Source: Calcarisporiella thermophila CBS 279.70 (lineage: Eukaryota > Fungi > Calcarisporiellomycota). Taken from it: 64,000 nucleotides of DNA. The notes below the pieces were generated by a model, which was not told where the DNA came from, searched no databases, and saw nothing but the letters and a program-made list of their open reading frames with translations. The position numbers and the translations under genes are program-made. This document shows positions 5,200 through 11,265 of the stretch, piece after piece (positions within the stretch are counted from its first letter, which is position 1; each line of letters starts with the position of its first letter). The stretch covers positions 259,829 through 323,828 of the forward strand of contig NW_027192197.1 in assembly GCF_041956535.1 (NCBI RefSeq). The letters run 5' to 3'.

Positions 5200-8123
5200 C
5201 TACAACCATTCCTTGAATAAACGGATATAGATAAACTTCATGATCTGGGTAAGGCAGCAATAGCAGAATAAGATTGCCACAAGGAACCCATAGAAGTTTA
5301 TGGGGAGGTGAACCATCTGGAGAATCTCGCCTAGCGGTGTATACGGGAGGGCGATTCCTACTGCTGAGCAAACCATTGATGCTGTCACGAGCTGCCAGCT
5401 GCCAATCGACTGGATGAAGGGGATCTTAGCCGTACGGATCATATGCACAATAAGCAACTGCGAAAGAAGGCCTTCGTTGAACCAGCCGGTCTGGAAGATA
5501 GAACTTTTCTCCTCCGATTGCACGCCATAGTAAAACCACATCAAGCAAAAAGTGACCATATCGAAGATGGAAGAGGTTGGACCGAGGAATAGCATGAATC
5601 GCCCAAGGTTCTTTGCGCTCCAGTGATGCGGCGTAAGGAGATAATCGGCATCCACACTGTCCCATGGAATGGCGACTTGAGAGAAATCTGGAGATAAAAC
5701 AGTCATTTAGTCAACTTTCGTCCGTAGGAATACTCAAATTGCAAGATTGTCATACCATAAATTAGATTTTGCGTAAGAATTTGGATAGGATCCATTGGCA
5801 CCCAAGGAAGCCACGCAGAAGCAACGAGCATGGAAAACACATTGCCGAAATTTGAGGATGCGGCCATATTGATATACTTGAGGGTGTTTGCGTGAGTAAT
5901 GCGACCTCGAATAATTCCCTCGGTGATGATTTGAAGGTTTTTCTCGGTAATGATGATATCGGCAGCGTCCTTGGCAATATTCGTGCCCGTGTCCACAGAT
6001 ATACCCACATCAGACTCACGCAATGCAAGCGCGTCATTAATGCCATCACCCAGAAAGCCCACAATATGACCATTTCGTTTCAGACAAGCTACAACCTCTT
6101 TCTTCTGCAGAGGGGTCAGCTTGGCGAAGAGAGTAGTGCGTTCAACCACAGCCGAGAACTCCTCAGGAGTTTTAATCAAAGCGAGCTCAGGTCCGGTGAT
6201 AACATGCTGCGTGTCCACTTCCACGTCCTGGCAGATTTTCTTTGCCACGGGTAGATTGTCCCCGGTGAGAACTTTGACATTCACAGAATAGTGTTTGAAC
6301 TCCTTAATGGCCGCAGAAGCCGATTCCTTGGGCGGATCGAGAAAAGCGAGAAAGCCGTGAAGAGTCATGTCCGTTTCATCCGCAATAGAATAGGCCCGAT
6401 CTTCTTTAAATTCACGCGTAGCAATCGCCAGAACACGGTACCCTTCCTCGTTCATTGCATTGCACATGTCCGCCAGCTGACCAAGTTTGCTGGAGGTAAG
6501 CGGAACCAGAGTCCCGTCGGCCAGACTCACTTGGTTACAGATATTCATCATTTCCTCTACGGCTCCTTTGGTTACCATAATGACTCGATTTTCCGCCGAA
6601 AGGATGACACTCAACCGTCGTCGAACAAAGTCGAAGGGTAGCTCATCCATCTTGCTGAATTCTGCGAGATGAGCGGCTATTTCCAATCGAAATTCTTGTT
6701 GTCCTCCAAACTCGACAATGGCGGAATCGAGCAGGTTGCGCAAGCCTGTCTGGAAACAAGCGTTCAGATATGCCCAAGTTAGAACCTTGGTGCTCTGCTC
6801 GCCTTCACAATCGACACACTTGACAAGCACGACGTTTTCCTGGGTGAGAGTGCCAGTTTTATCGGAGCAAAGAATATCCATTGCACCTAGATTTTGGACC
6901 GAGTTGAGCTGCTTCACGATCGTCTTCTTCTTTGAGAGTTCAATGGACCCTCGAGCTAAGTTGGCATTCACAACCATTGGCAACATGGCAGGGGTAAGCC
7001 CAACTGCAACCGATAAGCCGAAGAAGAAAGCCTCTCGCCAATTGGACTTGGTCAACCCATTGATCAACACAACAAATGGAACCATTGCTCCCATGAAAGC
7101 GATTAACAAATAGCTTACGCGTCGAACACCCTTTTCGAATGCATTAAGTGGCCGCTTGCTCTCAAGATCGCGAGAAATGGTGGCAATGAATGTGAGGTCA
7201 CCCGTGGTAAGAACAAGCCCTCGTCCATAACCGGAGACCACGTTCGTTCCCATCAGACATATGTTAGGGCACTCAAGAAGACTCGCACTTTTGTCCGGCA
7301 TTTGAGCACATTTCTCCACGGGCATGAACTCTCCAGTGAGGGTGGCCTGAGCAACGAAAAGATCTTTCGAATCGAGCAACAACACATCGCCTGGGAAAAT
7401 GTCACCAGCTGAGATGGAAATGATATCCCCTGGCACCACTTCCTCCATGTCAATCTCCTCGGCAATTCCTTTGATCGAGTCATGAGCGCGGCGCACCACG
7501 TTTACTCGGGTCCGTACCAGATTTTTGAGGGAAATCGCCTTGCGGTTCGATTTCAGCTCCTGCCAGAAACGCAAAATCACAGAGAGAGCCACAATGACCA
7601 TTTCCAGAGTGAACGTCTGAAAATCAAGCTGAGCAGCAGAGATGATCGCCAGCACAGTGATGAGGATATTAAAGGGGTGCCAGCAGGCATTGAGAAAGAT
7701 AACGATCACGCCTGGAGGCTTCGAAGCAGAAAGAATATTGGGACCATGAATATTGAGACGCTCTCTTGCCTCCATTTGGCTCAATCCCTCCCAATCGGTA
7801 TTGTAATGATTGAACACGGTAGCCTGGTCTTCCTCTCTCGCGTAGCAGAGCAGGCGTTCGGTCACTTCTGATTCAGCTTTGGATGGGACGACGCGGCGCT
7901 TGAAGAACCAGGGGAACCACTTGAAACGAGGGGCCAACATTCTGCGCTGCAAAACTGGTGGCATCACTAGCGAAACTCCATCCTGTGCAGGAGGGACGAG
8001 TTGGGAAAACTGATTCGAAGACGAAGTGGAATCAGACCGACTGTTACGGCTAGGGAAAACATGTGGCACTTTTGACTCGGCCTTTTCGCAAACAATATCT
8101 TCGGCCTCCTTTTTGTAGGACAT
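5200..8123 (-). CDS. mgtA: Magnesium-translocating P-type ATPase-like protein, P3B (MgtA/MgtB) family
   Basis: CSDKTGTLT, DELPFDFVRRRLSV, KGAVEE, FLDPPK, LTGDN, FAKLTPLQK, GDGINDA, SSNFGNVFS, QNLIY|DFSQVAIPWD (intron 5755-5688), GPTSSIFD, FQTGWF..LLSQLLIVHMIRTAKIPFIQS. These are MgtA-type motifs. Confidence 0.93.
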
Positions 8124-8144
8124 GATGGTAGAGGTTTATGTTGT

Positions 8145-8278
8145 TTAAATCTTGGTGCAAATTTTCTAGCGAGGCAATATAATAACATGATCGTCGTTAA
8201 TATACACTCTAGTTGTTCTCGCAAGATAATAAGTATCCTATTTCATACCAGATTGGCGAAAGCTTTGGCTTGACACAT
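8145..8278 (-). promoter_or_regulatory. Predicted intron-split uORF (MCQAKAFANL|KICTKI*) in the MgtA 5' leader
   Basis: ATG 8278. Donor CTG|GTATGA at 8248, branch-like ATTAAC, acceptor CGCTAG| at 8166 (83-nt intron). TAA 8147-8145. Main ATG 8123. Confidence 0.55.
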
Positions 8279-8467
8279 AGGTCAGAGAGATTAGGAATAT
8301 TGCGATTTATTGACTCTATGGTGGTTTCTGGGGCACTTGGCCGGGGGATAGTTCAGGGAAAATGGTAGCCAAAGCGAAAGATTTGAAAAGGTTAAGGTGC
8401 GCCAACTTGGTAGTGTTTGGGGGAAAAGGGATAGGAAAAAGTCTGAATAGAGATGAAACTAGGCAGC

Positions 8468-8473
8468 TTTATA
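8468..8473 (-). promoter_or_regulatory. Candidate TATA box (TATAAA) of the MgtA-like gene
   Basis: TATAAAG on the minus strand, followed by pyrimidine-rich leader-like sequence, about 190 nt upstream of the uORF ATG. Confidence 0.4.
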
Positions 8474-9868
8474 TTGCGCTTTTTAAAGTGTACAAAATGT
8501 TTGATCGATTAGGATCAGAGATGGAAATATGTATATATGCCAAACGTTACATTTAATTCAAACTGAGCTTGAGCTTGGCCCATTGGACATCTACATAAAA
8601 CGTGGAAAAATAAAGGTTGGCGGAGTTATTCTTGGCAAATGCGCGATTTTTCATTTCCTTCATCATTAAATGAGGAATCTCTCTCCCAACCCAGAAGTCT
8701 AGGAGGCTTTGAAATAAAATGTAACCGAAGCCGGCCTTCTACATACCAAATAATGGTTTTGTCTGAGTAAAAATGACCCATTTTGGATCTAACTTTTCTC
8801 GAGAGAATATGCGAAAATAGAACGGCTCTGTAGAGAGCATCGATAAAGCCGGCGGCTGTAAGGTGCTGGATGAAATCCACTGTTTGCCGAGAGTTTGTTC
8901 CCTGAGAATATTTTGGTAAGGGGGAACGCGGAATGGACAGGAAGCATATAGCTGGATAGTATGGTTACTAATGCGCAGAGGGATTTTGCGTCCGAGTCTG
9001 TATATGGCATTTATAGAGCATACATTGGTTAGGTTCGGATCACCTTTCTACGCAACTTGGCTTCTACGGTGCTTCTGTCACAGCCATTCCGAATATTGGA
9101 TCGCTGGATACCTGGAGAAGCGCGGATAGCCCACTGCACGCACATTGATACTCTCTCGTACCGCCTTTGTTGAGATTGCGGTAATATTTGGGTTACTTGT
9201 GTTTCCCGGTGGTTCAGCCTTCAGTTTTAAGTTTTCTCACCATGAAATAAAAGAAAATGAATGGAAAATGTCAGGTTGGGGGCTTATACGCACCATAGCA
9301 GGAATCACCCCTGTAATGCATTCGGTGTAATGCGGATTGCCCGAGTTTGGCTTAATGAGGAAGTAATTGATATCATTAAAGCTCGCAAGGTTAATAGAGA
9401 CATTATGACGTGGATTCGCTCATCTTGGTCAACGCTCTCAATTCTCAATATTTCTTTTATATGTTTTCGATCGGCAAGGTTTTAATTATCAATGGAGTGC
9501 AAGCTCGAGCTGATGACTTTAGAGGCTTTTTCATCGGCCCTCAAGTGACTAAAATGCCTAAAGAAAAGTAGTCCCAATTATCCCGGCAAAACAATCACGA
9601 AGTGCCCACAATTGTATAGGGTGGACGAAGCTAAGCCTCTAAATGTTTATTGGCGGGATGACGACCGCTAAACCCTGAAAGCATCTCGTAGTTGCAGACA
9701 ATTAGATTTCTGTGATCGAGTACTCCATAGCGACGCAAAGTGCGATTTCTGCCGCCATTGCAGCTCTCCAACATTTCCTGAGCTTATTCTAATAATTGAT
9801 TGTCTCATCTGGTCTTCTTGTTCCGTCTTGCTTGGGAGGAAGTTATTTCTTTAGGACTGCGAAAGAAA

Positions 9869-11265
9869 ATGTCGAGTAATCCTCCAACCCTTCCATCCAT
9901 TCGCACATTGCTGGCTGAGCCCATCCCTGCGAATCCAGGAGAAGGTAAATCCGACTTGCATATTATCTGATGATCCGCGATCTGAAGAATTCTAACCATG
10001 TTTTCTTTTCCACATTAGAACACCGATCTCATATTCACCATCAACGTCACGCATCGTCTCCATTTTCGGGGTATCCGGGTTCGCATGCCAATCCTAGTGT
10101 ACATCATGGCCGCACTCGTGGCCATATGAGATCAGGAAGTGACGGCTTTGCTCCAAGTTTTACATTTCCCCCACGGAAACCCCAACCTCCACCTGTGCAA
10201 CAGCAGCCGCAACAGCAAATTTATCCATCACTCAATCAAAACTGCCCAGCGCAGGGATCGTCGCCCACCACGCATATTGGCCAACTCGCCAATGCCCTTG
10301 CTGAAACCAACTTACATGACTCGCCCGACGCTTTTGGAAAGAATCCTCCCATGGAGCCCGATTTAACCAAGATGCGAACCCTCGAAATGCCGCTTAATCT
10401 CTCCCCCATCCCTTCGCCGTCTTTTCCCCCGGCCGGATCCTTATCCGCAAGCTCGTCTCCCCGCAGTAAACCCTTCTCCCTGCCTGCTATGCAAATGCAG
10501 CATTTGTGTCCTCCGGGATCTAACCATCAGCATTCCTACTCAGTCCCAAGCCTCTCTCCGTCCTCCACCTTTTCCGACAATTCAAAGCGAGCACGCTCCA
10601 GAACACTCTACACACACCACCGATCGGTATCCGATTTTACGCACCCTTATTCAAACCCCATGCATCGTGAAAGCTCGCAGCCCTCGCCCTTGCCGGCTAC
10701 AGCCGTGGGAGGAAATATTCCCACCCGGGAGGAGTCGACCCCACACACTGTTCGTCAACACCGCCGGGCTGTCTCCCATACAAGCATCGATAGTATTCTT
10801 AATAACGAACCTTCCCCTCTGACGATGGACTCCTTTATGCCAAGAAAACTTGCGCCCCCCTCCTCCATACTCTCGAATGAACCCTCGGGGCCCTCCCGGC
10901 TAGACAGATCGCGCAATTCTCCCTCCAGCCCCCTCTCCTCCGGCTCCAATTCGGCATCCTCAGGCTCGTTTGCTAGTCTCCCCGGATTAAACCATGGGCC
11001 AACCTCCTCGCCCGTTCCTGCGAACAGCAAGTTTCCCCACACCTCTCCCTCCCCTTCCTCCTCTACCGGCTCACAAAACCGCTACCAGTGCCCGTACTGT
11101 AGTAAGCGGTTTTCCCGACCCAGTTCACTCAAGATCCACACGTACTCCCACACTGGGGAGAAACCTTTTGTGTGCACGGAGGAGGGCTGTGGTCGCTCTT
11201 TTTCGGTACAGAGCAACTTGAGGAGGCATATGCGGGTGCATATAAAAAAACCACACAAGGAATGA
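9869..11265 (+). CDS. C2H2 zinc-finger transcription factor (two C-terminal fingers, Nrg1-like arrangement)
   Basis: Exon 1 9869-9944 MSSNPPTLPSIRTLL, intron 9945-10018, long S/P-rich region, then [50 protein letters not shown]. Confidence 0.88.

Follow-up and report, generated by a model that had tools for sequence, protein, structure and literature searches.

Does a eukaryotic gene for an MgtA-type (P3B) ATPase carry a leader ORF comparable to mgtL, the leader ORF of bacterial mgtA? The question is raised by a pump gene in a 64,000-nt stretch of the Calcarisporiella thermophila genome (the window), whose leader had been interpreted, in a sequence-only reading, as holding an intron-split AUG uORF that could be a Mg2+-responsive counterpart of mgtL. 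To our knowledge, both the function and the regulation of P3B pumps in fungi are unstudied, and in the papers that we searched on fungal P3B/MgtA pumps, Mucoromycota uORFs and magnesium uORFs we found no description of such an element. A 2023 review states that P3B pumps occur in no eukaryotes besides plants and describes Mg2+ transport by eukaryotic P3B pumps as debated; the uORF described here sits before a pump of the very class that it calls absent from non-plant eukaryotes (PMC10654040). The earlier proposal holds in part: the leader does have a deeply conserved ORF in front of an MgtA-type pump, but it is a different ORF from the one described. The logic of the leader annotation is thereby corrected to a conserved ORF without an AUG. 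This ORF, which ends in Pro-Pro-stop, is probably a real translational control element, and the AUG mini-ORF at 8278 looks incidental.

The pump gene and its relatives

Exon 1 of the gene alone (806 codons) scores 855 bits against TIGR01524, the equivalog model for Mg-translocating P-type ATPases, compared with a cut-off of 610.75, which places the pump in P3B, and P-type ATPase domains are found in the gene product (Pfam). The protein is 100% identical to a public 951-aa C. thermophila protein that starts at the same ATG (8123). Because of in-frame stops and this public start, an N-terminal extension of the ATPase into the leader is rejected. The one confirmed coding intron of the gene opens with GTATGA (Table 1). 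The nearest orthologue, that of Jimgerdemannia, has just 54% protein identity. A C2H2 zinc-finger gene is the divergent neighbour of the pump, and the two have a common intergenic region of 1.8 kb (window 8474-9944).

The genome has a second MgtA-type gene on contig C6, a divergent, AT-rich paralogue with 40-50% identity and three or more introns, each some 70-100 nt long. It changes frame without an intron at a T-rich run in the C-terminal membrane domain (L002:2788-2836; C6 about 1161720-1161768), which is either the mark of a pseudogene or an assembly error.

Genes that carry the uORF described below are paraphyletic across the eukaryotic P3B clade in a quick tree of proteins P0001-P0183, from which it follows that the element is old. 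The Lipomycetaceae P3B genes are nested in Mucoromycota as sister to Apophysomyces (SH-aLRT 98; 64-68% identity), dictyostelid P3B genes are likewise nested within Mucoromycota genes, and those of Basidiobolus cluster with bacteria. These placements suggest several transfers.

Table 1 Features of the pump gene and its leader in the window, followed by the leader uORFs and donor-like sites of the Mucoromycota species compared
Feature	Window position	Strand	Description
MgtA-type (P3B) ATPase gene	5200..8123	(-)	ATG 8123, coding intron 5755-5688, stop TAG 5202-5200
TATAAA box, ATPase promoter	8468..8473	(-)	68 nt upstream of UUG
Start block TACCAAGTTGGCG	8400..8412	(-)	UUG 8405-8403, A at -3 (8408), G at +4 (8402)
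ATG-less uORF, 29 codons plus stop, (M/L)AHLNLFKSFALATIFPELSPGQVPQKPP-stop	8316..8405	(-)	7/7 Mucoromycota orthologues
Pro-Pro-stop end CCA CCA TAG	8316..8324	(-)	Prolines invariant in eight sequences
AUG uORF part 1, MCQAKAFANL	8249..8278	(-)	Weak context; conserved in no orthologue
Candidate 83-nt 5'UTR intron	8166..8248	(-)	GTATGA..ATTAAC..TAG; donor hexamer identical to that of the coding intron
AUG uORF part 2, KICTKI plus TAA, if spliced	8145..8165	(-)	Sequence read
Leader uORF, Calcarisporiella			QKPP-stop, 29 codons, TTG; donor-like site GTATGA 66 nt after stop
Leader uORF, Jimgerdemannia			LKPP-stop, 33 codons, TTG; donor-like site GTATGT 8 nt after stop
Leader uORF, Apophysomyces			KEPP-stop, 26 codons, TTG; donor-like site GTAAAA 47 nt after stop
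Leader uORF, Bifiguratus			QKPP-stop, 29 codons, TTG; donor-like site GTAGGT 6 nt after stop
Leader uORF, Umbelopsis			FEPP-stop, 19 codons, CTG; donor GTATTT 0 nt after stop
Leader uORF, Halteromyces			TKPP-stop (TAA), 23 codons, CTG; donor-like site GTAAGA 17 nt after stop
Leader uORF, Gongronella			KKPP-stop (TAA), 25 codons, CTG; donor-like site GTAAGA 12 nt after stop

A conserved leader frame without an AUG

Two blocks are common to the leaders of Calcarisporiella and Jimgerdemannia, where they are collinear and similarly spaced from the ATG. Block 1, TACCAAGTTGGCG (window 8412-8400), is a 13-mer that is identical in Jimgerdemannia (L030:2209-2221); an 11-mer, CCAAGTTGGCG, is also present in Apophysomyces, with similar distances from the ATG (-287, -290 and, in Apophysomyces, -269). 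Block 2 is GAAACCACC[A/T]TAG..TCAA (window 8328-8308) and was found again in Umbelopsis. The near-palindrome of block 1 is CCAAGTTGG. The two blocks are the opposite ends of a single open frame, which reads ..AAG TTG GCG ... CCA CCA TAG (8405-8316) and contains no ATG. A string at its end had been taken for a near-cognate start, ACCACC-ATA-G, in another frame; the letters are really CCA CCA TAG, the last codons of this uORF read out of frame.

The element is not a repeated or regulon motif. The 12-mer ACCAAGTTGGCG has two copies in the 28-Mb genome, the other of which is within a coding exon, and no similar uORF occurs at CorA-family or other P-ATPase loci; since the CorA-family loci of the genome lack a similar ORF, nothing points to a Mg regulon. 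The exon with the other copy belongs to an M13-type peptidase gene on contig C10 (L036:4300-4830), whose two clear introns (donors GTGAGG and GTATGT, branch sites CTAAC) are bona fide intron examples for this genome.

We examined seven Mucoromycota species and one mRNA for the uORF. In each of the seven species, the 300 nt before the ATG contain exactly one ORF that ends in CCN CCN stop, and it always follows the same pattern, with a YUG start, 19-33 codons and a [K/E]-P-P-stop end (TAG or TAA; Table 1). The interiors are unalignable and unequal in length, the proline codons vary synonymously (CCA, CCT, CCC; Jimgerdemannia ends in CCA CCT TAG) and the stop switches between TAG and TAA. At the start, all seven species share the A at -3 and the TG of YTG, a purine stands at +4 and GCG usually comes next, so that as a sequence feature a suboptimal start, namely a near-cognate codon in good context, is present throughout. 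Four species also have an in-frame AUG in the uORF, always with a pyrimidine at -3; the main AUGs always have a purine there. In five species the YUG is preceded by a TATA box at a distance of 62-70 nt (Calcarisporiella 68, Apophysomyces 70, Umbelopsis 67, Bifiguratus 66-68 and Jimgerdemannia 62, the last as TATAC). In Bifiguratus (L031:2430-2500), the 46 nt ahead of the annotated start hold three ATGs, and GTAGGT follows the uORF stop after 6 nt; the annotated start or the leader structure may be wrong in this species.

Chance accounts poorly for this pattern. In Markov simulations, a Pro-Pro-stop in the 400 nt upstream has a probability of 0.012-0.14 per species and a product over the seven species of 10^-8.9, a test that is less affected by the post hoc start rule. 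The full feature arises by chance with a probability of 0.0006-0.004 per species, figures that are optimistic since the YTG start rule was defined after the data had been seen. On 528 kb of Calcarisporiella strand there are 64 Pro-Pro-stops and only 2 full features; the orthologue loci (157 kb) hold 6 full features, all of which are the uORFs.

The uORF is absent from Lipomyces, a Lipomycetaceae-like Logan contig, Sorochytrium and the C6 paralogue, whose leader proved unrelated when compared; Limtongia has an SPP-stop, and the start is absent. The exact leader pattern gave no match in metagenomes. Among 80 metagenome loci related to the Umbelopsis protein (up to 50% identity, mostly bacterial-looking, one from a gut metagenome), we used only L041, a dictyostelid-like contig of 4 kb with 34% GC. 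It has an ..IYIPP-stop (TAA) at 803-811, 153 nt upstream of the P3B ATG. Neither strand of the contig has another CCN CCN stop (P about 0.04), and the stretch upstream is A-rich with no clear start visible. The uORF may thus reach beyond fungi.

In an Umbelopsis-like relative, the uORF lies within the mRNA and is followed by a 5'UTR intron. The 3058-nt Logan contig L121, whose protein is 87% identical to that of Umbelopsis isabellina, has none of the introns that interrupt the genomic locus L037, one of which (61 nt, L037:2429-2489) comes directly after the uORF TAG; it is therefore most simply a spliced mRNA. Its leader contains the uORF at nt 17-76 (CTG 17-19, TAG 74-76), and only 11 nt separate the stop from the main AUG at 88. 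L121 and L037 share 93.5% identity in the uORF stretch and 81-88% in the CDS.

An element that acts as RNA is rejected: there is no Rfam family match, and the region folds no better than shuffles (z -1.6 to +1.4).

Proposed control of translation and competing readings

The explanation that we favour as a whole, with somewhat more confidence than doubt, is that the ATG-less uORF gates translation of the pump in a manner like uCC, HOL1 and TRPM7. Its parts differ in strength: a conserved, translated uORF very probably exists, it is likely to repress the main ORF, and Mg2+ as the effector is a tentative proposal. Transcription would start about 30 nt past the TATA box at 8473, and scanning ribosomes would then reach UUG 8405 in its strong context, where a minority may initiate. 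These would read 29 codons, of which the interior could drift freely, and arrive at the Pro-Pro-stop end, where peptide bond formation and release would be slow and eIF5A-dependent, as in the AZIN1 PPW and the HOL1 PS-stop. A ribosome paused there would obstruct or queue later scanners and boost initiation at the weak start, with fewer reaching AUG 8123. If high free Mg2+ promotes the use of weak starts and low Mg2+ lets ribosomes bypass them, as in TRPM7, the result would be negative feedback on the pump; polyamines, through inhibition of eIF5A, would be an equally possible effector. Given this Mg2+ dependence of weak starts and the polyamine/eIF5A effect, pump synthesis would be lowered when cytosolic cations are plentiful and raised when they are scarce. 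An intron directly after the uORF would be the ancestral arrangement, to which the AUG uORF at 8278 and the 83-nt intron may be downstream, lineage-specific additions.

The same uORF could instead sense polyamines or eIF5A activity, or act as a constitutive damper, and not respond to Mg2+, a reading that we think unlikely as a whole. Pro-Pro-stop is the eIF5A-dependent type of motif found in polyamine-sensing uORFs, what eukaryotic P3B pumps transport is uncertain, and the CorA-type Mg transporters of the genome have no matching uORF. Against this, the regulated gene scores as a Mg-translocating ATPase equivalog, and TRPM7 is a precedent for a weak start favoured at high Mg2+.

It is much less probable that the blocks are DNA elements, such as transcription-factor or core-promoter sites (e.g. 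CCAAGTTGG), and that the open frame is coincidental. The near-palindromic form of CCAAGTTGG, the fixed distance of the block from the TATA box (62-70 nt) and the C2H2 factor gene as divergent neighbour would agree with such a role. However, all seven species keep the frame open and in register despite diverged and unequal interiors, Pro-Pro is kept with synonymous codons while the stop changes from TAG to TAA, TTG alternates with CTG only, and the Umbelopsis block is inside an mRNA.

The intron-split AUG uORF (8278-8145) is a highly improbable candidate for a Mg2+-responsive regulator, although its description agrees with the sequence in every letter. The TATAAA is at 8473-8468 on the (-) strand, and the uATG at 8278 has the weak context reported for it (C at -3, T at +4). 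From 8551 to 8124 the sole ATGs are 8278, 8246 and 8188, the latter two within the candidate intron, whose letters are as described (GTATGA 8248-8243, ATTAAC, TAG to 8166; 83 nt); the ATTAAC stands about 31 nt ahead of the first downstream AG, which is that of the TAG ending at 8166. Unspliced, the uORF reads MCQAKAFANLV-stop; the spliced form adds KICTKI and then TAA 8147-8145, with its stop 21 nt before ATG 8123, and is in the frame of the ATPase, shut by two TAA codons. If it is in the leader, a weak AUG with a 21-nt spacer would be mildly repressive.

None of these AUG uORF features is above chance. Base composition predicts 2.6-4 ATGs in the leader stretch, so a single surviving uATG is not unusual, and the ATG-free run of 273 nt has a P of about 0.07. 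The hexamer GTATGA occurs 105 times per 528 kb of strand (264 kb of genome), 1.03x the expectation, and at this background frequency says little on its own; GTAAGT, GTGAGT and GTATGT are enriched 1.3-1.6x in the same 264 kb. We used such hexamer enrichment and a few homology-proven introns in place of de novo intron sets (ORF joining, EM), which had converged on noise.

The uORF exons (10 and 6 codons) were set against the leaders of nine further eukaryotic orthologues, six from Mucoromycota, two from Lipomycetaceae and one from Blastocladiomycota, and of one Logan contig, both by script and by eye. An equivalent uORF is absent from every one of them: its position, its peptide and its very existence are unconserved. 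The Jimgerdemannia leader has a single uATG, located inside the donor AAG/GTATGT, that of Limtongia has none within 400 nt, that of Lipomyces has one only at -364, and the remaining orthologue leaders have short ORFs unrelated to it. The lack of an equivalent uORF in orthologues had been named beforehand as a finding that would count against the AUG uORF model, which accordingly fails. The peptide is also without a stalling-type motif.

Donor-like sites lie past the uORF stop in every species (Table 1), which makes the candidate 83-nt intron of Calcarisporiella plausible by position, as does its positional counterpart L037:2429-2489, which is spliced out in Umbelopsis. The larger distance in this species suggests that 66 nt with AUG 8278 are a lineage-specific insertion between uORF and intron. 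Use of a donor nearer the conserved uORF stop may even splice the AUG uORF out; the alternative donor GTCAAT at 8314, which would take out AUG 8278, is a poor site.

That transcription starts farther downstream, leaving no leader ORF in the Calcarisporiella mRNA and the blocks as relics, is scarcely credible: AT-rich TATA-like strings do also occur within the candidate intron, but the start context, frame, Pro-Pro-stop and TATA spacing are all intact in Calcarisporiella and the homologous region is transcribed in Umbelopsis.

Significance and comparison with known systems

Few regulatory uORFs with a non-AUG start have lasted for hundreds of millions of years, and the known ones (AZIN1/ODC, HOL1) exposed feedback loops. 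The uORF of plant GGP is another that did so. In its boldest form, which we hold to be speculative and somewhat doubtful, gating by the ATG-less uORF would make it an ancient Mg2+ sensor of eukaryotic MgtA-type pumps, a non-AUG Pro-Pro-stop leader peptide that is independent of mgtL and present in Mucoromycota and perhaps Dictyostelia; translation of the leader peptide would then signal the level of free Mg2+ in the cytosol to the mRNA of the pump itself. As a compact and mutable element of 90 nt, it allows one to ask whether fungi sense Mg2+ or polyamines at the ribosome, and whether bacteria and fungi have converged on proline-dependent leader peptides for one transporter family.

The uCC of AZIN1/ODC has a near-cognate start in good context, and pausing with ribosome queuing has been proposed for it (PMC11550727). 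As in the fungal uORF, only its C-terminal proline motif is strongly conserved; this motif is an internal PPW, whereas the fungal uORF has Pro-Pro-stop, is shorter (19-33 codons) and precedes a P-type ATPase. The Pro-Ser-stop of the Saccharomyces cerevisiae HOL1 uORF impairs release when eIF5A is inhibited (PMC11550727). HOL1 resembles the fungal MgtA-type genes in being a cation-transporter gene with a short uORF in which a conserved X-Pro/Ser abuts the stop. It differs in its AUG, its PS-stop and its role as a polyamine importer, whereas the fungal uORF begins with YUG, accompanied in some species by a weak AUG, and ends in PP-stop.

At TRPM7, the weak start of uORF2 is favoured at high Mg2+ and skipped at low, which yields feedback (PMC4227784). 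The likeness lies in a suboptimal upstream start before a protein of Mg2+-transport type, and the weak in-frame AUGs of the four fungal uORFs, with their pyrimidine at -3, have a TRPM7-type context. TRPM7, however, has two AUG uORFs and no proline-stop motif, and its sequence is unrelated to the fungal uORF.

Bacterial mgtL is a leader ORF of mgtA with functionally important proline codons (PMC6460261), and the fungal uORF is likewise a short leader ORF with proline codons before an MgtA-type ATPase. In contrast, mgtL has an AUG start and interspersed prolines and works by coupled transcription-translation attenuation, a mechanism that a nucleus does not allow. The alternative RNA structures and termination of an mgtL-type leader have no parallel here: the gene is nuclear, its leader has no stable or conserved structure, and there is no Rfam match. 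With no homology shown, the resemblance would be convergent, and the fungal uORF would be a functional analogue of mgtL, not its homologue.
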